Part shown: piece after piece, positions 10,901 through 55,824 of the stretch
Position numbering within the stretch: position 1 is the first letter of the stretch
Layout: every line of letters begins with the position of its first letter
Source of the DNA: Fimbriosthenelais zetlandica
Lineage: Eukaryota
Direction: 5' to 3'
Assembly (NCBI GenBank): GCA_977030845.1
Contig: OZ365112.1
Span: forward strand, 17,980,001 to 18,044,000
DNA: 64,000 nucleotides
Position numbers and translations under genes: made by a program
The notes under the pieces: model-generated
Told to the model about the DNA's origin: nothing
Database searches by the model: none
Seen by the model: only the letters and a program-made list of their open reading frames with translations

Positions 10901-12481
10901 TCTCTTGTGATGACTGTAAAGGTTACTTCCTCATTAAATTGGACACAAACGTCACTGACTCTAGCTGATATTTTCTTTTTATTCTCAGATAAAAAATCTA
11001 AATGCTTTTAATCGTGATTTTTAGCCACGCATGCCAAACTTTGTTCTTGTCACTATGTTTAATAGTCCGCAATGTTTATAAATTACCGTCCTGGCAAACA
11101 CTTGACCGGCAGCACCATTTGCTCATTGCTCATGATAATATCAGTTCTCTTTGCCGTTATAATTGTGTAAATCATGCAGGGTAGATTTACTTTGTCATAC
11201 CTGAAGCTTCGCTGATCAAAGGTTTGATATCATAGAGATAATACACAAGCTCAGAAAGTAAGACAACCTTTCAGACCATTCAGTCCACATTGATGACACA
11301 TTCCTCACCCTTGGTTAAGGGCACTCCGGCTTAATGAAATATCCTAACATGTGGCTTGACATTGACTGCAGTTGTCCGATGAGATAAGGAGCACCATGCG
11401 ATAATGTAATTTGCTCCCGGGCTGAGGGCTGAGGTTATCACTACAGACATTGACTTCTTGTATATCAGATGGGCAGGTGGTGGAGGTGAACAGTCGATAA
11501 GCCTGGTCGTATTGAACTTGTCAAGGCTAGAGCATAGCTCTCATATCTGAATGAGAGATGTCATTGAAGGTCACAATACCTGGAGGCCATCTCTCAGCTT
11601 CAACCTACTCCTAAGCAATGCTGAGAGCTTTTCCATTTTCAAAGGGGACATTCTCACCCCTCATGTGGGTACATGGATAAATTGATTACCTGATGGTTCA
11701 AGCCCACAGAAATTGTGTAGTATAGTTCCCTATTAGCCATAGCGGCATAAACATAGTGAGTGAAGAAGAAGGCATATTTTTTAAGGTATTAGAAGACCCC
11801 GGGTTAGCATAGGTCTGAGTAAAGCATTGGATTATGATGCTAGTCATTGACAGCCTTCAGGCATTGGATAAGACAAAGCTTTTATAGCTTCTTGTTTCTT
11901 TTATGAGTCCTCCATTAGCAGTTAGCATTGTAGGATGTCTAATAATCGAGGTGATCCAGTCTCCTTACCGTCTAATGTGATTGCCTTTGAAAACGCTGGT
12001 ATGGAAGGAGAAAGGCAGTTGGAATCAGCACATTGATACCAAGAAATTATGTAATTTCCAGTAAAGGCACGATATATTAAGTTAGTTGATCAAGGTGAGT
12101 CACCTCGCAGTTCTTCTACAAGGATCAGCTCAATTATTAAGACACCACATAAGATCGAGGAGCACTGGCCTTCAGTGTTCCTATGATCAACACCGGCCTT
12201 TCACCAAACCTTCTTGTGTGGGAAACTGCTGGATGCCCCGCATAGACAATGAGTATTGGGAAACAGTCGAGTCAGCTGCATGTTCCTATTTCATATATAC
12301 TTACTGTCAAGTATTCAAATGAAGAGAGCCTGATCAGTCAAGTAGAGATTGCCAGAGGTAGAAGGCTGTCCCTGCGAAAGAGAAAAAATAATTGAGAATA
12401 TAATGCCAATTGAAAATAATCCTTCACCTATATTCTGTTGCCGCTCGTTCTTACCTGTTTCTCTTTTCGTTTCAGATTGCC

Positions 12482-15400
12482 ATGGATGTCCGGGCTGTTC
12501 TAGCATTTTTGGCTGTTTTGGTTGCCATAGTAACAACAGAATCTACAGGGAAAGGTAAGAGTGGGTGTAGATAATATTAAATTATGTATTGCTGCAATTA
12601 GGACATTGAATGTCGTCATTGTTGAGGATTTACCTTGTATACTCATGTGAAAGCAATGCCTCATACATGATAGCGTATGATGGCCTCCTGTTGAGGAATA
12701 CACCACCATTCACAGTTCCTGTGATGTTCATCTCTTTGTACGCATATGTCTATATGTTGTCTTCTGTGCAACAGATATTTGTGCAAGTGTTCTAGAACAT
12801 AATCAACAACACGCCCCACATCCTGAGCAGAGAGACTTGTAGATGGAACTGCCATTTCATTGTGCCTTCCTCGGGTGGACTATTTGAAACTAGTTATTCA
12901 TAAGACATATATGATTTCCTTACCAACGAGGTCTTATGAATCAAAGTATTGAAGGTTCCCTTGTTTAATTTCAATGGTAAAGAAATGAAAGAGATGGGTC
13001 CATTGAGAGACAGGCCTGTTGTGTACACTTCAAGAACAATTTGTTACGTTTTACAGAAACGAATATAATGAGTCAGTATCTAAATGTTAAAGAAAGTGTC
13101 ATATTTCACATTGCCTGCTCCATTGCCAGTGTTCATATAAAATTTCCCTGGAGAATTTCAACATGTAGCTTGATGTTTTGAATTGGCATCATTATTTCTA
13201 TGATTGATTCTGTTAGAGTCTCAGATACGTATCATATGAAATGGACCGCTCTTGAATGCATAATCTCGGTTGGTCACAGGGCACAGTGTAGCCGTTTTAG
13301 GTCACTCTCATGTAGTAATTTTAACCCACCGGAAGTGGCTTGAAACCAGACAGGGGAGTGTCCATAACCTCGGATGATATAATTCTTGATCGTCCTCTAA
13401 ACCGGAAGTGTCTATAGTGATGCGCATGGCCTAATACAAGTAGGAAGTGTGACTTGAACCTAGGATGTTATCACCCTGAATCTAGGACTAGGGCACTCAA
13501 GAGTATTGCCAACCTAGAATGAGATGACTCTAGTGGGAAAACGGCGGTGATTTGATCCTACTACAACGACACAACTGTCATGGCGAGAAAGATTTATATT
13601 AAAGTCAAAAGCGATAATATTGAAAGAAGAGGTTATGCAGTGCTCGTTAGGTGACGATTGCTCGTCTGGATTCTCTCTCTGGGATCCCAGAAGAAACTCC
13701 TACCTGTGCATGTCACGCTATCAATGCCACGTGATTGAATGAGACATAATCGTGAGACAATGGCGCAGGGTTTGCGCTCTGACTACTTTTATCTGGTGAT
13801 TAGTGTACCGTTTTTTGGCGGTTCCTACTCACTATGGAGAGTAAGAAGGGGGAGGGCACAGTCAAGGAAGGGCTCAGTGTCGAAATAAGTGGAATAGGAA
13901 GAATGAGGAAATCTTAGAGGGTTTGCAGTATAGATTTGCGCCGTCTGTGCACATCTAAGCATTTGGGCCTGATTGCAGATTCTCCATGCAATAGCCATGA
14001 ATGTCCTTTTGTTGTGTAATTGAAAGGCTTCAGATCGAGTTACATTCCTGTCTTGTAAAGAACAGATGAGAAAGGTATTGATCGATGACCAGAAAGGAAG
14101 GTACAATACTAACTTGAAGTATCATCAATTAATCGATCCAAGACCTATATATCCATGACCCTCTCATCTGACTATGTTGCCAATATACCTTTGGACTATG
14201 TTGGTTTGTAATGAGAAGTAATTTGAATTCCCTTAAGGGCACCCAGCCATTGTTGACTTACTGCGCATTATTGACAACATGCCCCTTAATTTTCTCGAAA
14301 TATTGTAAGTTTTGCTGCAAAATAGGAAAGGGCAGGGTAGTACAAATGGATGTCCAAATTGCCTGTAAGGTAAAATGTTGATTTTTCCACTGAATATCGC
14401 ATGGAGCACTCATCCAAGGCTTATGTAATCTACTTCAGTGTAATTCTCTATGGCTGTAGAGCTGTGGTCAACATTGGCTGCCTCAAGTGCTTAATGCCAT
14501 GTGGAGTGTTTGCTTAGGTAGTAGATGTTTCCCCTCCTTTATTCTATGTAAAGTTTTGGCTGGATAACTCTTGACACCGCAATATTTTCATAAAATCATC
14601 TATTGTTTTAAAGATTTTATATTGGAATTATATATTTTTAGAGTGTTTTTAAAAAATGTTTAGAACTCTGTTAACATTTAAAAGCCCTGTGATTTCAATT
14701 AAGTCAATAGTATTGAATTTAGCCATCACCACGAACAGCAAGTCACAGAATTTGTTTCCTTTTCCTATCCCCTGGCATTTCGTTTAGTCCTATATGGGTA
14801 ATTACTGGTGGTTTCTGTGTACCACAACCCCAACTACTGTTTGTCCTCAATCCACACAAAGCCTGGATCCAATACAGAGTAGTATATACCCAGTCGCTAT
14901 CAGTTGGCTGTCGGGCGTGCTATACGGCCCCCGGAAACTAGGGACCTTGTGTCTATCTCACCACCAAATGGGAGGAACATTTCCACCAAGCCATAACACT
15001 GACCATCCCTTGTCTAACACACATCCAGGGGCAGCCACTTAGGAACTAGGTGCTGACAGAAATGCTTCCTCTCCCACTCCTGCCACTCTTGTTTTGCCTA
15101 TACACAGAATTACATTTCTGTTTTGGAGCGATACTATTGGTAAATTTGTCCACTCAGCAATTTGCCTCCAGCCACATTGGATAAAAGGAACTTGAGGAAA
15201 GTCCCCATAATGATTCTTCATGTAAAGCCATGAGGCTAGGTTTCGACCCGACAGCCTTTCCCCTAAAGGGAATTACTCCCAAATCTTGAATGTGGAACTT
15301 AATTTATTTGCCCATTTCTGCTAATGTCAATTCATTAAACCAAAGGATTGTATTGGCCTACTCCATTATTTTAATTCTAATGCATTCCAAGTTTAGCAGA

Positions 15401-18400
15401 TCTTCCCCTTTTTGCCATAATGTATTATGGTAATCTTTCATTCAGCTGAAATAAAGCTCATCTTTAATACGACCACCTTTGAGACAAAAGTGGTCTATGG
15501 GGGAAGCGGCCGATTCAGGGGTATTTTTAAGAAGGGAATTTTGACCGGAAACAAATATGGTCATGAGCCATGTCTTTCTAGGGCATTGGTCGCCTGAGAG
15601 GGGTGGTCGGATTGCGGGAGCATTGTCTTTCCTCAGGATAGTTTTTGTTCAGGATTAGCGTCATTTCAGACTTCGATCCCACATTATCGGTGGACAGTTG
15701 AAACGTGGATCGTCCTTGGATGTTAAGGTACACTGGGGTGTTGTTCAAGAGTTCCTTTGTTATCTCCATACACTCGCATGTGTCTTGGGAATGCATGGAA
15801 CTGAGCTCAGATCATGAAACAAGAGGAACTGCACACGTAGCTTCTGGTGGCGATAAAAATACAGTGGGTATGCCAGTCTCCAATTATTGGCTTTATGATG
15901 TTGAGTGCAGGGGGACCCGTACGTGGTTCTGAAGGTAGAGTTTGTTACTGGGAGAGGGATATATGATATCTATTCTGCCAGGAGAGCGGACGGAACATTG
16001 TGTCCTTCAAGATGATATGATGATTGTGCCTTATAGGACAAAGCTTTGTAACGAGTTGATTTACTTTGTTGACCGCTAATCACGTCTAACATCTATATTC
16101 ATTATAGACATATATGATAGCCATATCGTTTCTATAGTTGCCATGATAAGATTTGTATTGTTGTAAGGCTTGTTGTCAGTTATTTTTCTACAGGTACATT
16201 TTTTACATTTCCTTGGTAAAGCTGAGATGAGAAGTTGAGTAGGCCTATACAACTACAGTATACAACACAATAATCATGGTTTCTAAATACATTATAAACA
16301 CAGAGTATTACATTACAATGACTAGCATATTTTTAGCTGACATATGTTTCTTCTTAAATAAATATTGTATATGTGACATTCACTTTTCACCCTTTTCCAA
16401 AGAAGGACATACTTCGTGGATTGCAGGAAACTAAGATGTAGCTTGACATTTGACTGGGACCTGTTTTGCCAGGATAGAAAGTGGAGGCTGACGTACAGGT
16501 CTTGGATTAGGCCTGTTATATCCACCGATATGATACCCTCTCCTGCTGACCTTTGGTGGTATTGAGGACCTATTATATTGGCCTCTGCTCTCTCCTTCCT
16601 CTCAGTAGGAAACAGTTGGCGAGTCGAGAGCTACAGTAAAAACCATCTGCCCTGAAGCTGTGCCAGAAAATGCATGAGTAAATTAATGCCAGTTATAAGA
16701 TCTTATAGGAGAAGAAGCTGTGAGTGAGGGTATAGGTGGGGTTAAATAGGTTGTTGCGAAGCCTTAATTATGGGTTTTGTCCCCGTTTTTGCTCCTTGTA
16801 TAAGCCTTGTCTTTGCTACTTTCCTATACTCAACGTCTATTAACTCTTGCAAGTTAGAACCCTGCTTAATTTGTATAGGAAAAACCGATATTATCCCGAG
16901 AACATTGCCTATTAGTTAATCGGGCCTCTTGGGAATATTTATGATGTTGTAAGGGGCCGTGAACCGCAGGGGCCATATAGTGTGGGCCCCTTATAACACT
17001 ATATAGTCTAGAACACCCAAAACCCTATAATTATGATAAAATTAACATATATAAATAAACTATTTTGGGTCTAAGTCTAAATCTATCCTGGAAAAGCTCT
17101 TGTATTCTGCGTGGAATATATATCAGGGAAGGCCTTACTTCCATTGGGTGGATGGAGGGAGATTTATTGCGTTTTTAGTAACATGTTTTTAACTCTGTAT
17201 AGAAGGCTTTAATTTAGATATTACTTGATAAATGCACCCCATAAACTCTCAGCAGTGGGTCTTTAAAAGGATAATCAAGAATTATCATTATTAGGCCTTC
17301 CGGGCATGAACATTGTACGGTTGTTTTAGCAAAACAGCGGGAAGTCTCAAAAAAACATCCAGGATCCGCCTCTGCCATGTGAGGCTCTGCAAATTCAGCG
17401 TGACAGGAAAATTGCTAGATTTATGTTTCACTCTTGATGGGTTCAAGAGAGACACTTTGTATTAAAGGAGATCAAAGGGAGGATTTCCCTTCTAGAGGGG
17501 GCGAGTGTTTTTGAGCCGTATATATCCGTTGGGTGTGTCAAACTAAAACAAATAATTGTCCACCATTACCATGCCAAGATTGTTAGTTAATTAAAAGCTA
17601 GTTTGAATCATCTAATTACCATCCACTTGAGTAATAGCAGCTTTAACAGTTATTAATTTAGTCAGCATGATAATTCCTATAAATTATAGCAATAATTAAT
17701 TTTGGTTCATATAGTGTTGACATGCGAACCTCGTGCTTAAATGGCTCCCAATTTTACCTCTCATATCAAATTATTATTTGCATGTATTATGTCATATGGT
17801 TGTTATAATACATTCTTTTTGCCCTTTGTTGTTAGACTGCCCCAATGTGGACCTTCTTCATTACCACCACTGCCTGATATTTTACCTTTTAATTAAGGAT
17901 TTCCATAGATTTGATCCTTTCCTATAAGGAAACATAAAAAGTTTGATATATCGAAACTGTTGTCATGGAAACGTCTTGAATTATCCACAACTGACAGAGA
18001 CATTGTTTGGCAATGGTTGCCCCAGTCTTTGCCCCAAACAAATCACTGAAGACAAGAGGAAGTCTTAATGTTTGATAGACCGGATATAGTTTCACTAAGT
18101 GGCACATTTCTTGCGGGCAATGCCTTTTGGTGTCTTGGTTATAATCAGCTGCATGGGCGTTTGTTCATGGCGTCATTCTGTGGTTCCATCCCACCCTCTA
18201 ACATGCATTCTACCGGCCTAAGTTGGCAGATCTGGATTTGACTATAATGAAGGAAAGGGTGCACTGCTGCCATTTGAAGCGCGTGGGAAATGTTATTAGC
18301 CAATTCCGGCACGATTACGGACACAATAAGAACTAATGATGAAGGTAGAAGAGTGACAATGCAACTCTGAATTACAAGGGCCTTTTATGCTCCCATCGCG

Positions 18401-21400
18401 TTTATTAGTGAGGAAAGAGGATTAGTTATCAATTCCATTTTTGACTTGGGATTCTCCTTGTCCAGATTGAGTTCAATTCCTTTCTAAAGTTGCCTGTTAT
18501 TGGCGTGGGATCACCGAGCCTCATAAGGCCTGAACTGCAATTTTGAAGTTGCAGGAATAAATGGTGTCTTCAGTTGAAATACTGACCCTGATTTTCCGCA
18601 GTTAACTGAATATTGTTTATTTCTATCGATTTATGATTTTGGTTTTTCAATCCTTAAATGAAAATTTGAAGTGTCATTTTGCGACAGGATTATTTCCAAA
18701 TACATGCATCAAGAAAAACAAAACAAAAAGGGGAATCACCATTGGGGAGGGAGCAGGTGCAAAAAGGAATTATTTTGCAGATAGAAATGCATTGTCTTGA
18801 TTAAAGCCAATGTTTGCCTAAGAAACGAGCAGGACAAGAACTCTAATTGGCAGTAATCACCTTGGTGTGCATTCTAAATTAATTGGAAAAGTAAACAAAA
18901 TTCTGCTGCTAAAAATTGTCCTCTCACTTGTGGGTGTCACAGAGAATTTAGAAATACCTACCTCTTGACCAGATGCCACAATGCCTTATGGAATTCTTTA
19001 AGAAAAAGCAAATACCTGTTCATAATTGTCTGCCAAGGCAGGCAACTGGACGGCCATAAAACAGAGGTAATTTGAAATTCCCATGGCCCACCTTTCATGA
19101 TTTGCGCTGTGACGCCAGTTTTGGAAGTGGGACTGTGGAGGCGGCAGAAGAAGGCATAAAAACGATGGACAACGTCACAAGGAAGTATTCTATTAGTTTA
19201 TTGGATAATATGTCCAAGAAACTTGATAAAAGTCTTCCAGGCACCAGTGTAGGCTACTGACAGCTCCAGTGAAACTATGGGAATAAACTGATAAGCCTTA
19301 TCAGAGACCTGCAGGTGATGATCACATCATTAATACGCTGCTATTAATAGCAGAGGTCTCGCCTTCACGACCGGAAGTATGGCAGACTGTCAGAACAGGG
19401 AGAGTCCGATACTATTATTTTAGTATACCAGACCGAGTGGATAAAATGATATACCCAATTTAGAGATAAGATATGATCATATTCATCATATTCCTTTCTT
19501 AGCCTATTTATACTCTTGGGTTGTATATATAGAGTTGTTTCTTTTCGACGGGGATGGTTTAATTAAAGGCAGTAGATATATATAAGTAGATAGATATAAG
19601 TATAAAGTAGATATATATATAGGAATAGATGGTTGGCTGGTTGGTTGGTTGGTTGGTCACTTTATTTGATGAAATAGGATGATGTTTATGGTAATATAGA
19701 AAAGGCTTGATAATCATATTTTATAGCATCCAATGTTGGGGACTACTAGAAATAAGTCCCTAATCACTTGCTTTGGCTACTCACCTCCCATTTTACTTGC
19801 CATGGGCTTTCTAGTCATATTTGGAGGACCTCTAATGCCTTTAAGAAGCTTCTTCTATTCCCTTGACTGCCTTCGGTCAGTGAAGGGCAAGGCACCAGAA
19901 TACCACCCTCCTGCACTTACTACAGCTTTTGTAGACTTAAAGGAGCTAGCTGTGACATGGTCCTCCCCAGAGATATTAGTTATAACAACTTAACAATAAA
20001 AGAACATAAATAAGGCCGGGTTATCTACCACCACCAGACCTAGCAAGTCACCGCGGAGCTTGCCCAAGCATGGAGTGCAGATCAAACTTTTAAAAGACGA
20101 ACAAAGATGGTGGCATTCATCGGAATGATTCGGACATGACGTGGTAAAAACTGTTGTGGTGTGTCCCATATGAGATTGACAATATTTGAGTTCAGCCACC
20201 CTATAATACCAGAAGCATTATGTAAAAAAAAAATGTCATAAAAATTATATACCTCTTATAAATGATCCAGGAAGCAGCTGCTGACCTGTATAAGAGTAAT
20301 ACGCTGCCAGAACGAACATTACATTGGACTTGTTCAGTATTTGTCAAGTGGACATTTTAACCATAACTCTATATCTGTTTTCAATTTTCTCTTCGATTAT
20401 GAACTTACGAAGCTTGAAAAATTACCTTATCAATCTGTACCTTAGAAACCTAATAGGCTATTACGAATTCCCCATTATAACAGTTTTATATGAGCGGACC
20501 TTTTACCACCCTTATCCATCCGTCTCATTCTTATTGAAATCCGGAAAGGAGTGTCAATTTACCAGTTCATTAATTTTTTTATATTTTAGAACAACGCTCA
20601 GACACAGCGCCTATATAGGCAGGTTCATACAACTGTGCTCAGTGTATTTTTATTATTACATACAAAAATGGAACTTCTGACATACTCGTGTCTTAAGCTA
20701 AAATCCCTGTAGGAGCGAGACCTCATTAGGGTACATCAAGTACCAGTATAATGGAATTTAGTGCAAAAAATTCAACTTCCTATAACTCTATTAAGAGTGA
20801 TCCAAGTAGAGGAACTCTTGATGTCAGGTATTGCTCATCATATATGTAGCTACAGATCTCTGGTTTTTGATCATCTAATCTAGGGTGTGTTAATATTACT
20901 GCCATGGGGTCTCTTGTGGTAATCAAGTTGTTTAACCAGGTGACTGGATTGCCTTTTCAGTACGTATTATAAATGCAGCTGATTCAGTCATATCACTCTG
21001 ATGATGTACCCAAAATAAGTTGTGGTCATTTTCTGGTGGTAGCAGCCATTGTCATTGCCATATCATATTTCTGCCTGTTGAATAAAAATGATATTGGGAA
21101 TGGAATGATAACCAATCTAGGCAGGTTCAGCAATAGTAGTTGTCAAAGCATCTGTCACAAAAGCAGATTCCATCTGGCTTTTCTTGAAAATGAATCATTG
21201 ACCGTTTTTACATCATTTTTGTCATTGCGTTTCTTTTTCATCTGATTTTCATCTTTTCATTTCCAGGGGACCAAGAAGCTGCAGATGTAGATGAATCTTC
21301 TTTAGACAAACGTCCTAGTTTGATGCGATATGGCAGGGGAGGACTCTTACGGTATGGCCGCGGTGGTCTCCTACGTTACGGAAAACGTGGCGGTCTAATG

Positions 21401-21811
21401 AGGTATGGACGTGGCAGCATATTCCGGTACGGCAAGCGCTCTGATGACATACAGTCTGACGATGATGAATTTGACTCCACTAAGAGGTTGTTCCGGTGGG
21501 GAAAGAGAGATGACGAAGGTGACTTCAAACGCTTGTTCCGGTGGGGTAAGCGAAGTGGAGAGGAAATGGCTGACGAAGAACTAGCAGAAGAGAAGCGCCG
21601 ACTGATGCGATATGGAAAACGCAGTGATGACGAGGATGACCTAGACAATTACACAGCTGAGAAGAGGATTTTCCGATACGGCAAGCGCGCTCATGACGAC
21701 GAGGCGTTGGAGGAAATCAAGCGGCGGTTGATGCGTTATGGTCGGGACACCCGCGCGCCACAGAAGGGGCCCCATGTACCATTCAGATTTGGAGAAGAGG
21801 AGGAGGAATAA
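12482..21811 (+). CDS. RYamide/LFRWamide-type multi-peptide neuropeptide precursor, 205 aa, join(12482..12554,21267..21811)
   Basis: Exon 12476-12554 (acceptor ttttcgtttcag, donor AAG|GTAAGA, phase 1) encodes the signal peptide MDVRAVLAFLAVLVAIVTTESTGK. It joins in phase to the exon after catttccag at 21267: GDQEAADVDESSLDKR-PSLMRYG-R-GGLLRYG-R-GGLLRYG-KR-GGLMRYG-R-GSIFRYG-KR...LFRWG x2...LMRYG x2, IFRYG...APQKGPHVPFRFGEEEEE*. Gly amide donors, mono/dibasic sites and acidic spacers are typical of prohormones. Confidence 0.93.
14250..14620 (+). mobile_element. Decayed DIRS/Ngaro (tyrosine-recombinase retrotransposon) RT fragment
   Basis: GKGRVVQMDVQIA followed by IYFSVILYGCRA resembles Ngaro RT GKG..MAK.D...A and YY.D..LPFG.RS; interrupted. 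Confidence 0.35.
18200..19260 (+). mobile_element. Second DIRS/Ngaro-like relic (RT start and possible tyrosine recombinase end)
   Basis: GKGALLPFEARGKCY*PIP at ~18252; TFHDLR...GSGTVEAAEEGI and a shifted-frame RW at ~19090-19170 resemble the YR H-x-x-R...AA..G...GRW motif. Confidence 0.3.
19630..19658. repeat. (GGTT)n microsatellite next to a short AT-rich repeat
   Basis: tggttggctggttggttggttggttggtc seen directly. Confidence 0.8.
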
Positions 21812-33798: not shown

Positions 33799-36700
33799 TT
33801 AGGCCTCGCTCGCATCCACCTTAATTGTCATGCTCTCCCCGGCAAACTCTGTAGGTGCCGTGGATTTGGAAGTTGTCTTGAAACTTGCAGTCATGTAATG
33901 AATTGAGTCGTTCTTCTTGTCCTTCCTTTGTCTTCTCAATTCCCGCCTGTCCTTCCTATTTCTCTCCTTTTCTTCTTGTTTTAGTCTTGCTTCCTCCTCC
34001 CTTCTTTTGGCTTCCCGCCTTTTCTCTTTTCTGGCTTCCCTTCTCTCCTCTTTTTCCTTCTTGCTTCTCTTGGATCTCTTTGGGTCATCCACTTCCTTTG
34101 CTGGTTCATCTTTGAGAGGAAGGTCTCGTATTGCTGTAGTCCTGACCACGCTGGTATAAAGATCATCATAGGAGTACACCGAGTCCTGTCTAACAGTGGC
34201 CACCCGATAATCTGGATACAATATTAACATTTCATTAGAATCTCCCAACTTCTTGTCATCAATTGCAATGAGAACTTTTTTATAGTCATCTAAATGCTAT
34301 CACTGTTGCTGAGGGGGTACATGTAGTAGGGATAGACCTATTTCTTTCCGACACTTGGAATAGTTTAGTGACTGGTATCTAGCTATGTAGATATTAGTAT
34401 GCCTACCTCGGTTATGAACTGGCACCTCATATTCCCTGCTGCCTACGTTATGTGCTGATGTTTCTGAGTCTAATGCAGCTGTGGTAAGTGAAGATATTTT
34501 TAGTTAGAACCCATGTTAGTATATGTACATGGTTATACATTCAGGTCTACATCAAAACAGACATCAAGGTCTGGGGTCTATGTGTTATAGCTGTTAGTAT
34601 AATTGTTTGTGAGAATACTTTACTGAGTGAAATTTAAAGTAAGGTAACTTACTTGTGCTAGTTGTTGGGCTTTCTGTTTCTCCGTAGAAGGGACGATAGG
34701 CGTTAACATCTTTGATGTCAGTAGGGTGAATGTTCCTTCTCTTCCTGCCAGTCAAATACAACATGGTTGTTAGAAAACTCAACATACCTTAACAAACACA
34801 GCCTTGGGTGGCCAAGTGATATATCTACTATAAAGCTAGTATATATGCCCACCAATCCAAATTGTCTTTATAAAGAAATGTTTGGATTGTGAGAACTGAC
34901 ACATTGCCGCCCTATTCAACTAAAAAAACTGAACTTACTTATCATGATTGTGACACCAACAGCATATACCGATGAAAATAATAACCACCAGAACAAAAAC
35001 GGTACAGACGACAATTACAACTGAAAAGAAAACAAATTAATCCTTATTCATTTGTTAATTGATCCGTATTTTGTTCACACATGTTCTGATTACCTTTGAT
35101 GATATATATTTGATATTTTGAGGTATTGACAAAAAATCTCACCTATTCTAAACACATCCAGTTGGCCGTCTGCAGTGGAGGCCCCAGAGCTAGGTTCTAC
35201 CGAGGTTTGCTGTACCTCAGAGTCTGCCGTGGTTGTTGCTGCTGTTATTGTGGCCGTTGTAGCTACACTCCCATTTGCAGCTTGCGTATCTGTTACATTG
35301 TCTGCAATACATATCATTATGATGCCATTTAATCAAGGTTTTAAACTCATATAGACCCTTTTTAAAATGACTAGTATTAGTTACGAAGTAGTCTCAACCA
35401 CCATACAAGAAAGCTAAGCCGATTTGGGGAAGAATATAATCTGAAATTACAAACCATTGGCAGTTGTAGCCTCGATATTTCTTGGAATAGTTTGTGGTTC
35501 TGTATTCTGTGCTGAAACATTTAACAAAGCATTCAATTATTTCTTAATCTGCGTCCATTTGAGATTGCTCAGTTGAATATATTTTTTTTTTTATCAGATA
35601 TCACTCTTAAATATTCTTAATTTTACCCGAACTGCCAGCGAAACTTATAAAACCTATAAATAAAGGTCTCTGATAATTTATTCATTGATTCTTTTAAAAG
35701 ATATTTACCTATATAGCAGACATATGGTAGCTGTTGGTTGCAGTCATAGTCGTTCCATCCATAACGTTCTTGAGGGTTGGATTCAATAATCAAACACGAT
35801 TTCAGGTTTGACTGAGGTGCCGCAGACATAAATGATGTGTAAATGAATTCTTGGCCTGGAAATCATACCAAATGTTTAGTTTTATATAATGTTATATAAT
35901 TGGGCTAAGTTATACTAGCTAATGCAACTAAAGATAGTTATCACTTACCATCTAGCCATTTCCACAGCCGACCCACTAGCCCCATCCAGTATGGCGCCCT
36001 CGCTTGGATTTGATCCAGAATTGTCTTCAATTTATTAAAAGTGTCTGCTGAATCGATGGAGAGCAGGTCTCCAGACATGGCTCTACAGGTTTCCCTTGCT
36101 TTGAACCAGGTCTTCGTTAGCAGATTTTCTATATACACGCAGTGTGTATTTACCATGTAGTGGCTATTCCTATTCAGGGTACAGAAAATTGTTGCTGAAA
36201 AAAAAATGATAAATAGTCTTATTTCCCAATTGTGATTAGTTCTTATTTCTCACAATTTTCTATAATACTCTTGGCCATTGACTGGATTTACTCATTCTTT
36301 GTTCTGAATGAATTAGTTTGCTTCTAACGTGATTTATGAGAAGACTACTATACTTACGGACTTTACAGATGTAGTTCATTTTATCATGGCATGCTTTATC
36401 TCCCATCTTCCACATCCTCTCATTCCTATCCTCAAATATCTCAATGTTACCACATGACTGGTAGTCGTTAAAATCATTTGGTTGGTCATAGCCCCAATCC
36501 ACAAAGGCTCCTGGATCAGCACGAAGGGAAACATTGTTAATTTTTGTTCAGGTGTATAGTAAACGACTTTTAATTGGAAAATTGAAACTTGCGGGCAAGA
36601 TCTGCTGATTTCTGATAATATTTATAATAATATTACTAAATATTATTTATACGTACCACCAATCTTGTAAATAGTATTTTTGCTGGTTCCCCCACAATAT

Positions 36701-38888
36701 TGATTGATATCACCAAGACATGATCTAGTACAGCCGGAGGTTGATCCGTACACCCCATATGTGTCACCACAGCTGCAGTTAGTCCCTGCCTGTATTGAAA
36801 AAAATATTTTATAAAACCTAAAAAAAAGGTCTGTGATATCATGTTCTACGATTCAATGACTTGTAGCATCGTATTACGTTATATTTATTGCATCGATGGG
36901 AAAGTATGGCGAAATTGTTTTGAATGCCTTTATTACATAATCATATTCCGTACCTTGAGGGCAAAATACTTGTATTGGTCACTGGCAGTGGAGCAGTGGT
37001 CGGAACATTTCGCTGGCTCTATGAGAGGCATTAGAACACTGTTTGTGAATTCAGGATACGCCTGGCTTTCCATGAAACATCCTTGCAGATCCACTTCTTG
37101 TAAACCTGTGAAATTACATATGGAGGAATATTAATCAATTAATACTGAACAAAATTTTGTATGCATAATAACGAACTCATCATTAATTAATTCTACTCAA
37201 AGTTGAGGGAATGTACATACCATCTAGCCATCTCCAGTTGTTAAATCTGTTCCCTCCGAACTTGACACTTTCCTCATATCCACCAATAAACACCCTGTCC
37301 AGCATGTCTCTGTCAGTGGGGGTAGTTTTGGTTTTGACCAGATCTTTGATCATATTGAGGACTATATTGTTTGATGGCTGCTCTGGTAGTGAGGCGAGGT
37401 GGCCATGGCCAGGGTAACTCATGTTAATGGCCATATTTACACAGTCAGCCTCAGCAGCCTCCCAGGTCTTGGGCGTCTCTTTTAGGATGTAGCATCCATT
37501 GGGTGTTCTCACACCTTCACAGACTGGTTCTGCCAAAAATAACAAATAGCAAATTATGAATACATCAAAATTTTCCAAAGTGATGAAAGTCCGGAATCTT
37601 AAAATAAAGCAATGGATTACCTTTTGATATAGGCTGGGTATATTCTGATGGTTGAAGGCAGAAGGTGTTAAAGATTCGTTCAATAACATGAAAGCTGTCA
37701 AAGGCTGAGAAGTCAGGAAGCAGCCAGTAGGTGGTATTTTCCAGCCTGGGAGCAGATGAGATGTCTCTCACTTCTTTCTTGTCCACTTGGCGGGTGATTC
37801 CCACTGAGTACATCCTTATGTCTGCTTCCTCTGCCCTCCTAGCCTCTAATGTTGTCTTCTGTGTATCCCTGGTAGACTTCCCATCACTAATTACTATGCC
37901 AACATTAGACACCTCAGGCCTGTCCTCTGCTGTAGAAAACACCTCGGTCCTCATGACCTTTATGCCTCCGGAGGTATTCGTATTCTCATCTTTGATGGAA
38001 ACAGCTGAAATGGCCGCACTTAAAGAGATGTGGCTAGTGTACTTGGAGAGACCAAATTCCCTGGTTCCCTCATTTCCGAACTGGACAAAAGCAACACGGT
38101 CCTGGTCAGGACCTATGTTGAGGTAGTTGGTAATGCCTTTGATGAAGTTCTGGATTGACTTCCAGTTGGCGCAGTTCGATATAGTACTGTTTCTACAGAT
38201 ACTACCACTACCATCCACGACAAAAGTCAGATCAATCTTCTCCCTGGCACAAACTGGTAAAATATAATAGATCATATTATACATTAACCTCTGCCAAATT
38301 CAAATGATTTATTGATACTTTTAGACTAAGTCACAGAATAAGTTTTTAATCTATGTAACTGGGGGAAATCGAGTTTCATTAGGAGTCATTAGGCAAATAT
38401 TTCTTAATTGATCAGCAAGAGAACTTACCGCCTGTGCAAGCAGCGCACCCTATAATGAAATGAGAAAAATAACCAATAAATAATCGAAAAACAATCAATG
38501 TAATTCATACATGTAACAGATTTACTTTGATACAAATCTATTCCCTTCAGAGGGAAAGTTACGGGCACAATGTTTGTCAAGCAGTCATATTATATAGTAT
38601 TTAATATATAAATTTTGAAAAGGTGGGTCTTAAATATTTTGTCACTTAGAATATAAGATATAATATGATCATTATTCCGCTAGTTAGCTATATTGATCGC
38701 TACTATAATACCCAATGGTTTCCAAGTAGTTACATAAGCCGTGTATTTGTATCAATGCTCTTGCCCGAACATAACAACCTCCATGTAGACATGGAGTATG
38801 GAATAAATAACTACTCACCACAATCAGCGACATTAGTTAAATATCCCACTAATAGTACTGATAAAACGAAAATCCTGGTAAGATCCAT
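33799..38888 (-). CDS. Type-I membrane receptor A: signal-vWA-CTLD1(WSC inserted)-CTLD2-S/T stalk-TM-cytoplasmic tail, ~919 aa, 14 exons
   Basis: complement join 38888-38819, 38449-38429, 38253-37621 (vWA, DGSGS MIDAS), 37529-37221 (CTLD1 N-half ending WRWLDG), 37105-36954 and 36789-36657 (WSC), 36510-36358 (CTLD1 C-half DWGYDQPND..SC..MGDKAC..YIC), 36194-35949 and 35855-35709 (CTLD2), 35301-35143 (stalk), 35020-34939 (TM), 34744-34653, 34478-34407, 34289-33799. All GT-AG; phases consistent; 2760 nt. Confidence 0.88.
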
Positions 38889-40583: not shown

Positions 40584-43500
40584 TCAGTTAGAGGCGTCTA
40601 CTGGACTCAGTTCCCTGTAGCGATGTTTCCCCTCATATCCACTTGATCTCTTCTTGTTCTTTTTTGACTTCTTGCTCCGTTTCTCTCGATGCTCATCCTC
40701 AAGTCGTGCTGGTAGTAAAAGGAAATATATTCTTTTAGTCGAAATTGATTTACTTGTACTTGTACTTGTACTTGTAGTGATGCAGCACATGGGTCATGGA
40801 AAAATATCCCAGGTTATTACTTTAAACTCAGAATTGTGGGATTGGTATGATGGCTGTGGTATGAATTTTTAAAGGAACATGTAATCAGATCATGTAAATT
40901 GTTAAAATTGACTTTTCTCTTGATTTAGATTTTTCTTGAGTAATCATCTTATTATCTTTGGTGACCCACTTACAGTTATAGTGTGAGTCTTCTGTGTCCA
41001 TGCTTAGATGGCGGTTTCGGTTAGGTGTGCCTGGTCCTTTACCTGAAAATGATAGTACATGTATTAGTAGAACAAACATAATGGAATGAATTTTAATGCA
41101 CTATTAACTCAGTTGTATTGCATAAAAAGTTTCCCATGAAGAACTCACGTCTGTTGGTGTTGTATTGATCAATTGGTATCTCCCTCGATGCAAGTTGGGA
41201 TGCGCTTAGGATTTGTTCTGGAAACAATTACAAAATGGATGGATTATTCTGAAAGAGTTTGGGGGTAAGAGTTATATCGAGTTCGAATTACTTATTTCTG
41301 ATAACAGCTTTGGACATTGACATATTTTCGGTCAGTTTTAAAACTTACCTCCAGAGCTTGGCCTATAGCTGTCATTGTCATAGTCATGGTCCTCCTTCAG
41401 GTAGTTACTATGGCCATAGTTACCATAGTAGTCCCCAAATGGTATGAACACCTGGTTACGTAAATCAGTGACGCCCTTTGGATTTATAGTATTCTTCGTC
41501 TTTCTGGTAAAATAAAATAGAAATTTACCACTATCATAATCATGTTATAGACGACAGAAATATGTTTCCCTTTTTAAGACGAAGGAAGAAAATTATAGCA
41601 AAATTCGTTTCATTACAAAATGGAGACAACAATTGTGTATAAACCTTTAACTCACCCTTTGCATACGTCAGTGCAGCAACATAAGACCACAAAGATGATT
41701 ATTACAATCACCACCAGAGAAACCAGTATAGCGATGACCACTGGAAATAAAGGCAAATATCTTAATAGGGAGGAATCATCATTTTTTTCCGTATTCTAAA
41801 ATTCCAAATCGCAAAATTTTAGACGATGCAGGCGGTACTGATTAGAATATGAACTATTCATTTTACCTATAGCCAGTGTGGTCAGTTGGTTGCCATCTTG
41901 GGTGGAGGCCCCGATGTTAGGATCAACACCCCCAGTGCCTCCAGACTGTGACTGTGTCCCCGCTTGTGTGGTCCCTGAATTTGAACTCGTGGAAGTAGTG
42001 GCCACCGTGGATGATTTACTCGGTTCTGGAGTCAGTCCCGCTCCCGCTCCCGCTCCCGCTCCCGCTCCTGCTCCTGCTGATAAAAATATGTTCATATGAG
42101 ATATATCTCAACATTTTAGGATCATGTATATACACATAGTTGTCTAATATCACAAGTACATTATATCCAAAGCTCAAAATCTCAAGGCTAAGTGTTAGTT
42201 ATTATGGAGGAATTATGCTAGAAGATCTTAGGGCCACTTTTGCCCAGGATAAGTTAAATAGAAGTTAGTACAAAAAAACTGGGGATCAACAAACTTGTAG
42301 TTGACGGCACGACAGTATGAGGCTCCGGGATTCTCTCTGGATAGTTGAATACAAATGAGAGTCAGGGAAGAAGTAGTAAAGGTATTTCACCAAACATATT
42401 AGGACACAAGATAGCCATCATGAAAGTCACTGCAAGTCACTAAATTTAAATCCACCAATGACACAAAATGTCAGTTAATTAATGTTTGTCCTTTGCAGTC
42501 ACTTACCCATAATGCAAACAGAAGGATATTTGCGAGCACAGTTTTCATCAGTCCACCAATAGTTTCCCTGATAATTGTACGTATAGACAATACAGTTTGC
42601 ATTGTCCTGGTTTGGTTCTACAGGGTCCCAGTTTGTGTACAGAATTGGGGTTCCTGAAACAAGGTGTTAAAATGGAATGTTAGGAATAGATACCTAATGC
42701 TAAATATGAAATATGCCCACCCTGTTTCGACTAATTTCCAGAGACCCATAGAACCTCAGTCACTTACCAATCTTCCAGTCCCATAATCTACCAACTAAGC
42801 CGATCCATATTGCCGTACTTTTCAGTTGGAACAATATAAGTTTTTGCTGTACTTGAAGGAACATTTGCTCTGAGGTTACAGACACAAGATCACCAACCAT
42901 CCCTATACACGCTTCTCTGGCTCTGAACCAGTTTTTGGCGAGATCAATGCCATAGAATAGACATTTGCCATCTGCCATTTGGTACTTGTAATTATTTGCT
43001 TGACAGTTAGGATTATCAGATGCTGAAAGATAATAATGGATGATTTCATTTTATTTTGATGTCATCCAGAAGTGATTATAACACATGTACATGTATACAT
43101 TTAAATTGATGATGATTACAGGATTTGACAATTTTCTATTTGTTGAATACTCACAGAGTTGGCAGATATAATAGTATTCTGCAAAACATGGTTCATCTCC
43201 CATTTTCCAGTCATGTCTGCTCTCTAGAACACCACAACTTTGGTAATTCTCAAAATTATTTGGCTGCAAATGTCCCCAGTTGCTGTAGGCTGCATCTGTA
43301 GGTCAGAAACCCAGATGAATGATGTGGCACAAATGATATGGATTAGCAACCTCAAAAATAATTCTAGTGAGGAAAATGTCAGAAAAACATTTTCAAATTT
43401 CCAAAAACATTTTCAAAGGTGAATATTATTACCTTTGACTTTGTAAATAAAATTTCTGTAACTGCCTCCACAGAATTCCCGGGGACGAGAATTGTCGAAT

Positions 43501-44883
43501 ACGCTACCAGAACATTGAGTGCTACATCCACTTGACACACCATAGCTTCCATAGGTATCATCACAGTAACAATAGCGCCCTCCCTAACATAACATCGAAA
43601 CAGCCAAATATAAATATAATTATTACATCTTCATCATTTTAAAATCTTATTATCTGTTGAAAATAAGAACTTGTATTGAAATATATATGTACCTGAAGGC
43701 CTGCATATGTATATCTATTACCCCTACAGTAGTCCGTACAGTTAGAGATCCACATGGGTTCCATGGTGCCTCTGTCACTGTTAGAGAAATCCTGGAAGGT
43801 GTAAAGCGATATCATATCTCTATTCCCTGGCACGGTATTATCAGCAAAACATCCTTGACCAAACAGCTCCACCAAACCTGTAAAAACACAATATATGATA
43901 TCATTAATATTATGAAAATTTCATCCTTATTATTTCTGTGCAAAATGCATAGGTTTTGACTCACCCTCAAGCCATCTCCATACAGGGTAATCTGTTTTTC
44001 CCCGCAGCGCGCTCTCCTCATATCCACCCATCCATAACCACTTGAGTTGCTCCCTCTCAGCATCACTCGGTTTAGTCTCGTAGTAAGTGAGTAGTAGAGA
44101 GTTGAGCTCGTCATCTCGATCCTTGGTCATTGGCATGACTAGCTGACCTGATAATCCTGATCTCCTCCCTTCCTCTTCACACGCTAACTCAGCCGCATCT
44201 CTCGACAAGGGGTCCATGTTAATCACATATATTCCATACGACCCTTGCAGCCTTATCAGTTGGGCTAGGAGTAAATGACAATATATTATAATAGATATAA
44301 TTATGCGTTTCAACATGCCAGTGAAAAATAACAGTAACACAACTGGGCTAAAATAAAGGTTAAAAGCGGACATATGCCGCCCTTTATTGTATTTCCCTCA
44401 CAATTGATGCAGTATGCATTTTGAAATTTCAATATCCATCTTGATTACATGATGTATATATTTTCATTTTTGTTTTTCATACCCCTTACAACCCAGCAAT
44501 TACTGCCTGTACAAGCTGTTACAAGCGCTCTCATATTGGACTTAACCCTTTAAACCGTTATGTAATCAGCCTTTCAGCAGTACTTAGTGTATAGCTCAGG
44601 TAATATGTGGAATATGTACACGCGTAGAACAGCCAATTGATCAACATTCATACTGCATTTCATTCTGTTTAAGATTCACTACACTAATTATAATAACAAG
44701 TATACACTTCATATGTTTAAAATGCTATATTATGTCCTTCGAGCAATGGCATGTTAATAGGAATGTAATGTCCTGTATAAAATACAAATATAATGAAATT
44801 ATAATCTTACCTTCATAGTGAGGTGATAATAATACCAAAATAAATGCGAAATTGACCAATATCCTCTTGGTTAAAGTCTCCAT
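40584..44883 (-). CDS. Type-I membrane receptor B (paralog of A): signal-CTLD1(WSC inserted)-CTLD2-stalk-TM-tail, ~662 aa, 14 exons
   Basis: complement join 44883-44811, 44527-44504, 44264-43965 (CTLD1 N-half ending WRWLE), 43877-43693 and 43583-43433 (WSC: GCFAD...CTDYC..YTYAGLQGGRYCYC...C.TQC.G...FCGG), 43295-43155 (NWGHLQPNN..SC..MGDEPC..YIC), 43022-42768 and 42653-42507 (CTLD2 with EPN), 42076-41867, 41740-41656 (TM), 41503-41349, 41217-41149, 41042-40974, 40708-40584. Phases consistent; 1989 nt. Confidence 0.88.
42036..42077 (-). repeat. Coding hexanucleotide repeat (GCRGGA)7 encoding (Ala-Gly)7
   Basis: tcccgc x5 plus tcctgc x2 on the + strand at the start of the receptor B stalk exon. 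Confidence 0.9.
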
Positions 44884-52100: not shown

Positions 52101-55100
52101 GTGTCTGGAAATTGGCCTTCAAATACCTTGTCTGTGGATGGAGACAATGGAGAAGACAATAACTCCTGTGGGAGCTTGGAGGAGCCATGCAAATCGCTTG
52201 TGTAGCTATTATATTCTCATTATTAAATACTGAAATGAATCATTATTGAGATGTTTCTTTTCATATGGTTGATGACTAATGATTGATTATTGCTTTTCTA
52301 GTTATGGATTGGCCAGGGTAGCTTCCTTCTCGAGGATTCACTTGTTTAATGCCAGCAGGCCTTATACGATAAAGTCGTGGGTCAATCGGAGGATCGCGAT
52401 TTTTGGCAGAGAACAAGATCCTACTTATTTCCCCAAATTGATCTTCGACGATGTCGTTATCACTGAAACTCGACCAAAGTCTGGTTCTGATCTGTGGCTC
52501 AGCAATATCAGATTGTCTGGTAATGCTTATCTTGGTGATGCAAAACTAGTTCTTGATACTGTCAACTTGTCTGGTTTTGCCTTGGATCTTGAAAGCCAAC
52601 GAAGAGTGGATATACACAGAACCTCTCTTGTAATTGACAACTGCAATGTTTCTGAATCAAAATTCATACTAGGAACAAGCCTAGAGGAATTGGATAGTAT
52701 CCCTGCTAATGTTGACATGACAATAAGCAGCTCTTATATCACAGATTCAAGGATTTACACTGCCGGAAAAACAGCTCAAATACTAGTGAGACAAGCTACT
52801 TTCAGTGGAGGTAATGTGAGGTCTGAGGACAAAAAGTCACCCTTTTCAGTATTGGTGGGTTCTCCTAGTAACATGCCAAATGGAGATGAGGGTCATAGAC
52901 CCAAGTCCAAGGCTGAAATGGGAGGGCCAGGACCGAGAAGTCGTGGTAACAGAATTGATGTATTTGACAGCAGTTTTGAAAGTTGTTACAGGGGAAAGGA
53001 CGAGTCAAATGCTGCCATGCGGCTTGGGATATTTGAAGAAGTCAATATTCACATCAGAAATACAAGATTTGAAGGAAACCGTAGAGGTTTGAGGATTCAT
53101 GTGGATGCATCAAAGCGTGGAAGTCTAGACATAACAGAGTCCCAATTCATTGACAACCATGCAATAGGCCCTGGTGGTGGCTTGCTGTTTAGCCAGTCCA
53201 GAGGAGCATTCAGTTTTAGATTAGATAATAATATATTTACTGGAAATTCGGCTGAGGGATTGAAAGGTACGGTTCTGGATGAATCGAGTAAACCTTCCCA
53301 CATAACAGGTAGTGGTGGTGCAATTGCTGTCGATGCCAAACCCTCTTTTAGATTTGGAAGCAGTGCAGAAAGGACAAAACATATTCTTGACATAACCAAC
53401 ACGGTATTTGAAAACAATACTGCCGAAAGTTTCGGTGGTACCATTTACCTCACTTCTGAAGTCAGTGCTAATCTAAGAAATAACTCTTTTTCTAATACAG
53501 CCAGTGTCAGAGGAATGAGGGCAAGAATTGGAGACATTTTGGAGGCAAGAGGGAGGTTGGTCATGTCTGATAACAAATTTGAAGCTCGGTCTTCTGAAGA
53601 CACTAAACCTATAATCTCTTATCGAGCTGACAGAGATGATAGTTTTCTATTGCCCCAGAATTTAACATTATATTGTTCAGCTAATTATGAAACAAGACCT
53701 ATCTATGATTACATCGAATCAAACACCTCAACCAGTGTAGCAGTCCTCCTCTTTTATTGTAAGGCTTGTTCCACGTATCAGTACAGTTTAACAGGTTCAA
53801 CTCTCATCATGTCGAGCAGTCCAGGACAGTTTATGTTAGATACCAGTGCAGAGCACAGTTGTCAAAAATGCCCATACGGAGCTAACTGTGTCTCAAAAAT
53901 AGTTGCGAAACCCAATTACTGGGGTATAAATGTTAATAATCAGGTCTTCATGTATCCTTGTCCTGAGAATTACTGCTGCCAGTCTGATTTCTGTACGACT
54001 TATGATTCTTGTGCTGAAAACCGAGTTGGTGTCTTGTGTGGAGAGTGCAAATCTGGCTACACAGAATCTCTCTTTTCTGCAGAGTGTATTGTTAATAGTG
54101 AATGTGGCATAAGTTCATGGTTCTGGGTGATAATTGTAGTTTATGGACTGTGCTATGTCTTCTTTTTCATTCTGCAGACCGAATTGAGGATATTAATAAT
54201 GAATTTTTCTGATTGGGTGAAAAAGCATTTTGCAAGATGGCAGCAAAGATGTACTTGTAGGACAACTGAAGTCAACAGCATGAAACATGGACCTAAAGAC
54301 TATGTCAGACAACCATCGAACAGATTGGACAAAAATAATGCTTATTTACAGATTATAATGTATTACATTCAAATAACCTCTCTCTTGAGTACAAGCATCA
54401 TTTATGAAGATGGTAGGGACGAACCAGTTGGGGGTCTGAAAAACTTAGTTGAAGGAACATTTAGTCTCTCTGCCCTTGGAATATCTGCGAACACATGTTT
54501 ATTTACTGGAGTAACTGCTGTGTTAAAAACATGGATCAAGTCTGGTTTCCTTCTTTACCTTTATTTTGTCTGGCTGATTTTGTATGCCATGGCCAAATGC
54601 CTTAGTCGGACAAACTATATACCAGATACCATCCATGAAGTCCCTATGGATTCCAGATTTGTAGTGGCCTTTGTGGACCTGATGCTCTATACATACCAGT
54701 ACTTCGCAGAGAACTCCTTCCTGATGTTAAAGTGTATTAAAATTGAATCTCTGGAAACAGAGGTCCTGTATGTATCAGGCAGTGTATTTTGCTATCAACC
54801 GTGGCAATACCTTGTGGTTGCATTTGCATTTGTGTATGTCTTCCCTTATTCAGTTGTGCTCACTGTAGCCCCAAAGCTGCTGAAAATTAGGAAGATCTCT
54901 GTCAAGGTCTTTGTAATTTCTGTCATACTTCCACTATTCTCTGCACCATATTTGCTCTTCATTTACATCAAAGAATGCTACTCTGATAATAGAAGTACTG
55001 ATAGGAGGCAATTGAAGGAGCAGAGGTATCATAAAGATGGAGGTACAGTTGACGCTGTGGTGGAGGTGGTGGCTGAGCCATACAGGAGTGATTTGGCTGG

Positions 55101-55824
55101 TGGGCTTTGCTGGGAAGGCATGATTGCCTTTAGAAGACTTATCCTTGTCCTCATTGCCACCCTAGTGACCAGTAGCCTCTACCGCCATCTTGGATTGATG
55201 TTAAGCAGCTTTATTATTTTAGCATTACATCTTCGTTTTGAGCCTTTCGTCTCCAAATCATGCAACAAATTGGAAACTTTATCCCTGGGAACTCTGCTTC
55301 TCATAAGCATCATGAACCTTTTAAAGGCGTCATACTTTGAGTCAGGAGAGATACCCAAAGGGCCAGCAGATACCATCTTACTCATTTGGGACTGGATTGA
55401 ATTGATGATTTTTGTAGCAGTTCCATGCTTCCTCCTTTTTTGCATAATATGTGCACTTCTGCTCCGTATTGCTGCTTTATGCATAAAAAATTGCAGGAGA
55501 TTCAGAGACAGCAGGAACAACCTTCATACAAATAATTTTGATCCACCAGCGTACAATGAACGTTATTCTGAAGCTGAATGGAGGCCTGATTTGGCCTCAA
55601 GAAATGCTGAACAATCTTTATGGGGAAGTCATGTGACTGAGATGAATGTCAGTGGCCCTCGTTACCGGAGAAGGAGGTCTTTACCCTCTGTGTTTGAGGC
55701 TTTCCCTCCTCAAGGAGACTCTGATTGGCCGAGTTGGTCAGGCAGAAGCAACACATCTTTAATAAGAGATTACAACCAATACTCTGGTGCCTATAACCCT
55801 GGGTTTTACTATAATCCACAGTGA
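49144..55824 (+). CDS. Large receptor-like protein: signal-CUB-3xLDLa-2xEGF-Pmp-like beta-helix-Cys-rich-multipass TM (~9-10)-tail, ~1562 aa, 10 coding exons
   Basis: join(49144..49210,50209..50479,50641..50816,50957..51070,51212..51307,51440..51553,51655..51765,51872..51988,52102..52201,52302..55824). CUB (C.W.I...RF..F.L...C..D.L); LDLa (C.DGSDE, CSDE, CPDGDDE); EGF (CQNDGAC..YKCSCTSGWSGSRC); G.D...CG...PCKS; F..N.A...GG[AG][IL] repeats; CPYGANC..NYWG..CPENYCC; hydrophobic segments. The exon 9 donor (GT|GTAGCT) is weak. AATAAA at ~55957. Confidence 0.88.

Follow-up and report, generated by a model that had tools for sequence, protein, structure and literature searches.

Does the gene that we term receptor A encode a CTLD (C-type lectin-like domain) with a second domain, WSC, nested inside it? 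The gene, for a membrane receptor of invertebrate type, lies in a 64,000-nucleotide stretch of Fimbriosthenelais zetlandica DNA (contig OZ365112.1 of assembly GCA_977030845.1, positions 17,980,001 to 18,044,000 of the forward strand), which is called the window and numbered from its first letter. In this gene two exons that together encode a WSC domain separate the exon for the N-terminal half (N-half) of the first CTLD (CTLD1) from the exon for its C-terminal half (C-half). This exon structure, with its intron phases and domain identities, is conserved at four loci in two species: receptor A, a neighbouring paralog (B) and two loci of another organism (L004 and L005). The explanation that best fits the whole, and that is probably correct, is a co-spliced receptor in which a WSC module was shuffled into CTLD1, the halves of which refold around it to give a two-module head.

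Gene structure of receptor A

Receptor A is encoded on the minus strand by 11 canonical GT-AG exons, assigned by translation and by reading of the exon borders. The spliced frame is open for 701 codons from the ATG at 38888 to the transmembrane helix (exon end 34940) and runs in the order signal peptide, VWA domain, CTLD1 N-half, two WSC exons, CTLD1 C-half, second CTLD (CTLD2), Ser/Thr stalk and transmembrane helix. The exons, followed by the candidate tail region, are

38819..38888, minus strand: exon 1, the ATG and a hydrophobic, signal-peptide-like N-terminus (MDLTRIFVLSVLLVGYLTNVADC), with a phase-1 donor
38429..38449, minus strand: exon 2, a 21-nucleotide micro-exon (…CAACTG…), phase 1-1
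37621..38253, minus strand: VWA exon, 633 nucleotides; Pfam VWA PF00092, E 5.4e-34, profile positions 1-169 of 174
37221..37529, minus strand: CTLD1 N-half exon, 309 nucleotides, ending NNWRWLD-G, phase 1-1; assigned beta0/beta1-alpha1-alpha2-beta2; aligned to CTLD2 by hhalign, with PDB matches that are mostly CTLDs
36954..37105, minus strand: WSC exon a, 152 nucleotides, WSC Cys1-Cys3; Pfam WSC positions 2-44 of 82, 15.9 bits
36657..36789, minus strand: WSC exon b, 133 nucleotides, WSC Cys4-Cys8 and the CGG motif; Pfam WSC positions 47-82 of 82, 17.5 bits
36358..36510, minus strand: CTLD1 C-half exon, 153 nucleotides, W..QPN...QSCG...WKMGDKAC...YIC; Pfam Lectin_C positions 71-106 of 107, 17.5 bits; also aligned by hhalign
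35949..36194, minus strand: CTLD2 N-half exon, 246 nucleotides, ending WKWLD-G; Pfam Lectin_C positions 2-59 of 107, E 8e-7
35709..35855, minus strand: CTLD2 C-half exon, 147 nucleotides; Pfam Lectin_C positions 73-106 of 107
35143..35301, minus strand: Ser/Thr/Ala-rich stalk exon, which helps to complete the open frame
34940..35020, minus strand: transmembrane exon (VVIVVCTVFVLVVIIFIGICCW), which completes the open frame
33799..34788, minus strand: probable cytoplasmic-tail exons, a candidate region of same-strand open frames outside the exon-by-exon model

The micro-exon is required for an open frame between exon 1 and the VWA exon. Each of the four exons from the CTLD1 N-half to the C-half is bounded by an AG acceptor with a pyrimidine tract and by a GT donor. 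The introns at domain boundaries are all in phase 1 and the intron inside the WSC domain is in phase 0. Spliceosomal introns in the window, which has a G+C content of about 39%, are short. The interval 36358-37529, to which the initial annotation assigned the nested domains, coincides exactly with the span that the CTLD1 N-half exon opens with its first base and the C-half exon closes with its last. The proposed order of an N-half ending in WRWLDG, two WSC exons and then the lectin C-half is borne out in the spliced open frame with canonical splice sites, and the motif strings quoted in that annotation are all present in the translation.

The putative tail region (33799-34788) contains the tyrosine motifs YEVPV and YSYDDLYTSV, followed by a low-complexity stretch of about 70 residues rich in Lys, Glu and Arg.

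The WSC module

Seven ectodomain exons of receptor A were scanned one by one against Pfam, with hits taken to E<=1; the family cut-offs are 22.6 bits for Lectin_C and 27.8 bits for WSC. Only VWA, Lectin_C and WSC were matched, apart from a weak match of the CTLD1 N-half to the CTLD-like poxvirus A33R family. At all four loci the two WSC exons together span positions 2-45 and 46/47-82 of the WSC profile, which is split at 45|46-47 in every case. Scored as separate exons, a and b give 15.9 and 17.5 bits in A, 20.6 and 15.3 in B, 23.3 and 23.2 in L004, and 35.6 and 26.9 in L005, with exon a of L005 exceeding the cut-off by itself.

The cysteine pattern in receptor A is C...C-x3-C...C-x-C...C-x3-C-x7-CGG, and its eight cysteines and the CGG motif are invariant in all four copies. 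In the Kremen1 WSC domain, which has four disulfides, the corresponding groups are C147/C151, C167/C169 and C186/C190/C198 (PMC5014086), and the local spacing in receptor A is the same (PMC5014086; PMC9024836). The CGG motif has been emphasized for the WSC domain of yeast Wsc1 (PMC9024836).

The flanking halves of CTLD1

The initial annotation anticipated split Lectin_C hits on either side of a WSC hit. With exons scanned separately, the WSC exons and the C-half do match Pfam, whereas Lectin_C does not recognize the N-half. In B the C-half scores 24.0 bits, in L004 23.8 and in L005 23.0, all over the Lectin_C cut-off; in A it falls below.

Other comparisons connect the two flanks. CTLD1 from A, B and L004, with the WSC domain removed and the N-half joined to the C-half, was aligned by hhalign to CTLD2 from the same three genes. 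The alignment has a probability of 96% (E 3.9e-9) and covers 105 colinear columns, uninterrupted over the junction, running through W-x-W-x-DG | ...W..(Q/E)PN..SC...C...C. When a profile of six N-half sequences was compared with the PDB, 18 of the 26 weak matches were solved C-type lectin-like chains, aligned on beta1-alpha1; they include DEC-205, echicetin, CLEC4A, codakine, CD69, CEL-IV, CD93 and type II antifreeze protein. The N-half of receptor A carries the CTLD motifs CY..., W.AAE..C, F/W-x-GG and WRWLDG. F/W-x-GG and W-R-W/V-L are kept in all four copies, Cys1 lies in A-A-E-x-x-C, and every C-half has three cysteines. On the hhalign colinearity, the PDB profile matches and these motifs, the N-half is assigned as one half of a CTLD.

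Cysteine parity bears on whether the halves are joined. The N-half of paralog B has one cysteine and every C-half has three, and therefore the halves must be disulfide-linked if no cysteine is to be left unpaired. The cross-half bond would be the canonical disulfide between Cys1 (alpha1) and Cys4 (beta5).

Insertion site and origin

The WSC exons sit inside a phase-1 intron following WRWLDG of CTLD1, and both resulting introns, between the N-half and WSC exon a and between WSC exon b and the C-half, are in phase 1. CTLD2 of receptor A has an ordinary phase-1 intron at the identical site (WKWLD-G | QEF...), and the same holds for CTLD2 in paralog B and in L004. In the general CTLD layout, strand beta2 holds WIGL, EPN/QPD is found in the long loop region after beta2, and WND is part of beta4 (PMC7618208). 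The insert follows W-R-W-L-D-G and precedes W-x-x-x-QPN, and is therefore within the long loop region. This agrees with the earlier proposal of an insertion at the ligand loop, since the site is downstream of a WIGL-type beta2 and upstream of QPN.

Nested-domain proteins arise when one domain inserts into a loop of another, a geometry that needs chain ends lying side by side. The strands of the WSC sheet are ordered beta1-beta5-beta3-beta4-beta2 (PMC5014086; PMC9024836); the first and last strands are therefore adjacent, and the entry and exit points of the chain lie close together. The simplest history of CTLD1 would be exon shuffling, in which a symmetric phase 1-1 module of two WSC exons entered a pre-existing intradomain phase-1 intron of a CTLD.

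Conservation of the insertion

A tblastn search of the window with the spliced receptor A protein located paralog B 6 kb away on the same strand. Its features are

43965..44264, minus strand: CTLD1 N-half exon, 300 nucleotides, ending VWRWLE-G
43693..43877, minus strand: WSC exon a, 185 nucleotides; Pfam WSC positions 13-45 of 82, E 5e-4
43433..43583, minus strand: WSC exon b, 151 nucleotides; Pfam WSC positions 47-82 of 82
43155..43295, minus strand: CTLD1 C-half exon, 141 nucleotides; Pfam Lectin_C positions 68-106 of 107, 24.0 bits (above 22.6)
42507..43022, minus strand: CTLD2 in two exons, 43022-42768 and 42653-42507, with a stalk and a transmembrane segment downstream

The two loci from the other organism belong to one ENA assembly and were found via the contigs of N-half profile matches. 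In their own numbering they comprise

L004 (A-like): VWA exons, N-half 10218-10535, WSC exon a 11240-11379, WSC exon b 12620-12752, C-half 14106-14249 and CTLD2; the spliced frame is open
L005 (B-like): N-half 10086-10394, WSC exon a 13685-13836, WSC exon b 14705-14837 and C-half 15339-15482

Intron phases of the WSC layout are the same in A, B, L004 and L005, and every length difference between equivalent exons is a multiple of three. In that order, WSC exon a is 152, 185, 140 and 152 nucleotides long (always 2 mod 3) and exon b is 133, 151, 133 and 133 (always 1 mod 3). Pairwise identities among the four copies are 27-40% for the N-half, 33-53% for the WSC domain and 39-66% for the C-half; the WSC values are comparable to those of the lectin halves, so that insert and host are under the same constraint. 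Directly after the insert, the segment QPN-x-F/Y-x-x-x-Q-S/G-C-G ranks with the most conserved stretches. By these sequence comparisons the WSC insert is coding and under selection at four loci of two species. Because it is present in both an A-like gene with a VWA domain (L004) and a B-like gene (L005) of the second species, it is placed before the A/B duplication as well as before the split of the two species.

No match to the VWA region of A was found by tblastn in the stretch of the window occupied by paralog B, and none was found in L005; B seems to lack this domain. In the gene table of a further contig (that of P0003) a VWA open reading frame (ORF) lies immediately upstream of the N-half ORF. 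In paralog B the only in-phase connection between a signal-peptide-like exon (MSAFNLYFSPVVLLLFFT..., 44264-44373, minus strand) and the CTLD1 N-half exon would use a GC donor, not GT. Two Logan contigs (L001 and L002) stop about 1.1 kb past the N-half exon and are uninformative on WSC. A further locus, L003, has a lone B-type CTLD1 N-half exon (9965-10276) in the same 90% cluster as that of L005; neither a WSC nor a C-half exon was found within 10 kb downstream of it, and the locus ends in a retroelement (RVT/rve). It is probably a truncated duplicate.

Alternative explanations

Several results weigh against a co-spliced receptor with a refolded CTLD1. At E<=1 the CTLD1 N-half has no Pfam Lectin_C match in any of the six family members, being too diverged. 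An AlphaFold2 model of the N-half exon alone, built from the six-sequence alignment, has low confidence (predicted local distance difference test, pLDDT, of 54.6), and a Foldseek search of the PDB with this model returned nothing at E<=0.001 and only two snake-venom CTLDs amid noise at E about 5. The WSC exon pair of A is 285 nucleotides long, and if it were skipped the reading frame would continue across a canonical CTLD junction. In CTLD1 the canonical Ca2+ site 2, or sugar site, is incomplete in A, B and L005: all four copies keep QPN, all four have Gln instead of Glu two residues ahead of Cys2, and the WND position reads M-G-D in A, B and L005 (Gly for Asn) and L-N-D in L004. This signature is diagnostic of Ca2+-dependent lectins and not of the CTLD fold. 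Finally, the library of 1.84 billion representative proteins contains no transcript-derived or annotated member of the family.

The in-frame junction raises the case that the WSC exons are a regulated cassette, so that a canonical CTLD1 isoform would exist alongside a WSC-bearing one, with splicing deciding which ligand-binding head is made. The two exons form a symmetric (phase 1-1) unit whose summed length is divisible by three at all four loci (285, 336, 273 and 285 nucleotides), and the skipped junction WRWLDG-GAFVDW..QPN resembles a normal, if short, CTLD hairpin. Phase symmetry would, however, be needed for exon shuffling anyway and is uninformative on present-day skipping. The WSC exons seem to have splice sites no weaker than those of the adjacent exons, and the skipped form would leave only two residues between DG and the aromatic residue of the next strand, compared with four in CTLD2. 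Exon skipping is also generally rare in genomes with introns as short as those here (92-164 nucleotides). A regulated cassette is accordingly judged unlikely; it would overlap with the nested-domain reading, as the isoform that includes the WSC exons would have the nested domain in any case.

The failure of Lectin_C on the N-half in six of six members, the poor model of this exon alone and its family-specific insertions relative to CTLD2 could instead mean that the flanking pieces are not one CTLD, and that the protein is a string of three units: a diverged, separate N-terminal module, a WSC domain and a lectin remnant. This is improbable given that hhalign places the joined halves colinear with a whole CTLD, that the weak PDB matches of the N-half are mostly CTLDs at beta1-alpha1, and that cysteine parity calls for a cross-half disulfide. 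The C-half by itself (beta3-beta5 plus loops) could not fold, although no other segment is as well conserved. The N-half model, despite its low confidence, also has the secondary-structure order E-E-H-E-H-E...E found in a CTLD N-half. Still more remote is the view that the WSC exons are nonfunctional intronic remnants, or the gene a pseudogene. The lack of any annotated family protein in the 1.84-billion library would fit such a view, but open frames, splice sites, phases, the eight cysteines and CGG are all retained in four copies that are 33-53% identical, their length differences are multiples of three, and the entire 701-residue frame of A is intact. An independent gene nested in the intron is ruled out, as the WSC exons have neither a start codon nor a signal peptide and are in phase with the lectin halves at all loci.

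Comparison with known systems

Canonical CTLD receptors with an intron after W-x-W-x-DG, such as CTLD2 of receptor A itself, share with CTLD1 the CTLD motifs, the Cys1-Cys4 and Cys2-Cys3 cysteines, the phase-1 intron site, type I membrane topology and, at the EPN/QPD position, the tripeptide QPN. Unlike them, CTLD1 is broken in its long loop region by a whole WSC domain of 90-110 residues, has an N-half beyond the reach of Pfam Lectin_C, and carries M-G-D at the WND position in A, B and L005. The WSC domains of Kremen1 and yeast Wsc1 (PF01822; PDB 5FWS, 7PZ2; PMC5014086; PMC9024836) share the eight cysteines, local spacing, CGG motif and Pfam span 2-82. The Kremen1 domain stands in tandem (Kringle-WSC-CUB) and that of Wsc1 at the N-terminus of a stalk, whereas the receptor A domain is nested inside another; none of the receptor A exons scanned has a Pfam match to Kringle or CUB.

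The best known animal proteins with both WSC and CTLD are polycystin-1/REJ-type proteins. They resemble receptor A in having the two domains in one extracellular region, but in polycystin-1 these are separate, sequential domains. The 701-residue frame of receptor A has a single transmembrane helix and contains no PKD repeats, REJ, GPS or multipass transmembrane region. With their defining domains absent, membership in the polycystin-1 or Kremen families is ruled out.

With nested-domain proteins in general CTLD1 shares a parent that is continuous without its insert, an insert with adjacent first and last strands, and a surface-loop site. It differs in that the insertion coincides exactly with an old intron, and an exon-shuffling origin can therefore be read directly from the gene. 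No reported case of a nested domain with a CTLD parent or a WSC insert was found in the literature.

An exhaustive HMMER search of the 1.84 billion representative proteins with a profile of the A and B N-halves gave four matches, all of them single-exon fragments: short ORF calls that end at the intron after WRWL-x-G. It returned no full-length relative, and searches of the literature on WSC with CTLD or Lectin_C and on nested or inserted domains gave no description of such an architecture. Both results are in keeping with the initial annotation, which did not recognize the architecture from any described receptor family. On this basis the CTLD receptor with a WSC domain nested in its long loop region is conserved and apparently undescribed, and the family seems to be restricted and unannotated.

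Proposed structure and function

The spliced frame predicts that receptor A would be a type I membrane protein comprising a signal peptide, a VWA domain, CTLD1 with its nested WSC domain, CTLD2, a mucin-like stalk, a transmembrane helix and a tail with tyrosine motifs. If, as we infer from the sequence, the CTLD1 halves are spliced together with the WSC exons and the CTLD refolds, then the halves would reassemble, tied by the Cys1-Cys4 disulfide, while the WSC domain would bulge as a separate globule from the long loop region at the surface. Strands beta1 and beta5 of the WSC domain are neighbours in one antiparallel sheet, so that the domain could protrude while the CTLD halves close. The mature protein would then display the WSC surface beside the strongly conserved QPN loop of CTLD1, so that the signalling receptor would carry a ligand-binding head made of two modules. 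That the WSC domain is a constitutive, integrated insertion of the long loop, and that its surface and the QPN loop form a single composite binding site, is a more tentative proposal and may well not hold.

The VWA domain, the second CTLD, the mucin-like stalk, the single transmembrane helix and the tyrosine-motif tail suggest that receptor A acts as a cell-surface recognition or adhesion receptor that would signal through its tail. WSC domains also bind proteins, as in the interaction of Kremen1 with Dkk (PMC5014086). The idea of a composite glycan sensor, advanced in the initial annotation, is plausible for receptor A and is kept at that level because the Ca2+ site is only partly retained and because a WSC domain can bind protein.

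Other features of the window

Two ORFs elsewhere in the window are recorded here.

21320-21811, plus strand: 163-residue ORF composed of short repeats, each closing with R-Y-G or R-W-G before a K-R or R (LLRYGR, LMRYGR, IFRYGKR, LFRWGKR and RLMRYGKR), with acidic spacers between them
52279-55824, plus strand: intronless 1181-residue ORF, its N-terminal part rich in repeats, which also has a Cys-rich stretch and numerous hydrophobic helices

The former looks like a multi-copy precursor of amidated neuropeptides of the RYamide/RWamide type. Relatives of the latter in a 5.8-billion library are limited to one Logan protein (59% identity) and two NCBI proteins (24-25%).

Implications

Few animal recognition domains have been studied as thoroughly as CTLDs, the ligand specificity of which evolves in the long loop region. 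To our knowledge, variation in this region has so far consisted of loops and short extra elements of secondary structure. A second disulfide-rich binding module in the loop would show that the scaffold tolerates grafts on the scale of a domain, which would be useful for lectin engineering. Profile-based annotation would miss such receptors, as the N-half has no Pfam match and the C-half only a partial one. If the composite site is real, receptor A would be the first lectin with a ligand-binding fold set into the specificity loop of a second such fold. If the proposed history is correct, the gene would exemplify, in textbook fashion, the shuffling of exons into an intradomain intron, with an arrangement retained from a time that precedes both the A/B duplication and the species split, and exon shuffling would yield nested as well as tandem architectures where an old intron lies in a surface hairpin.

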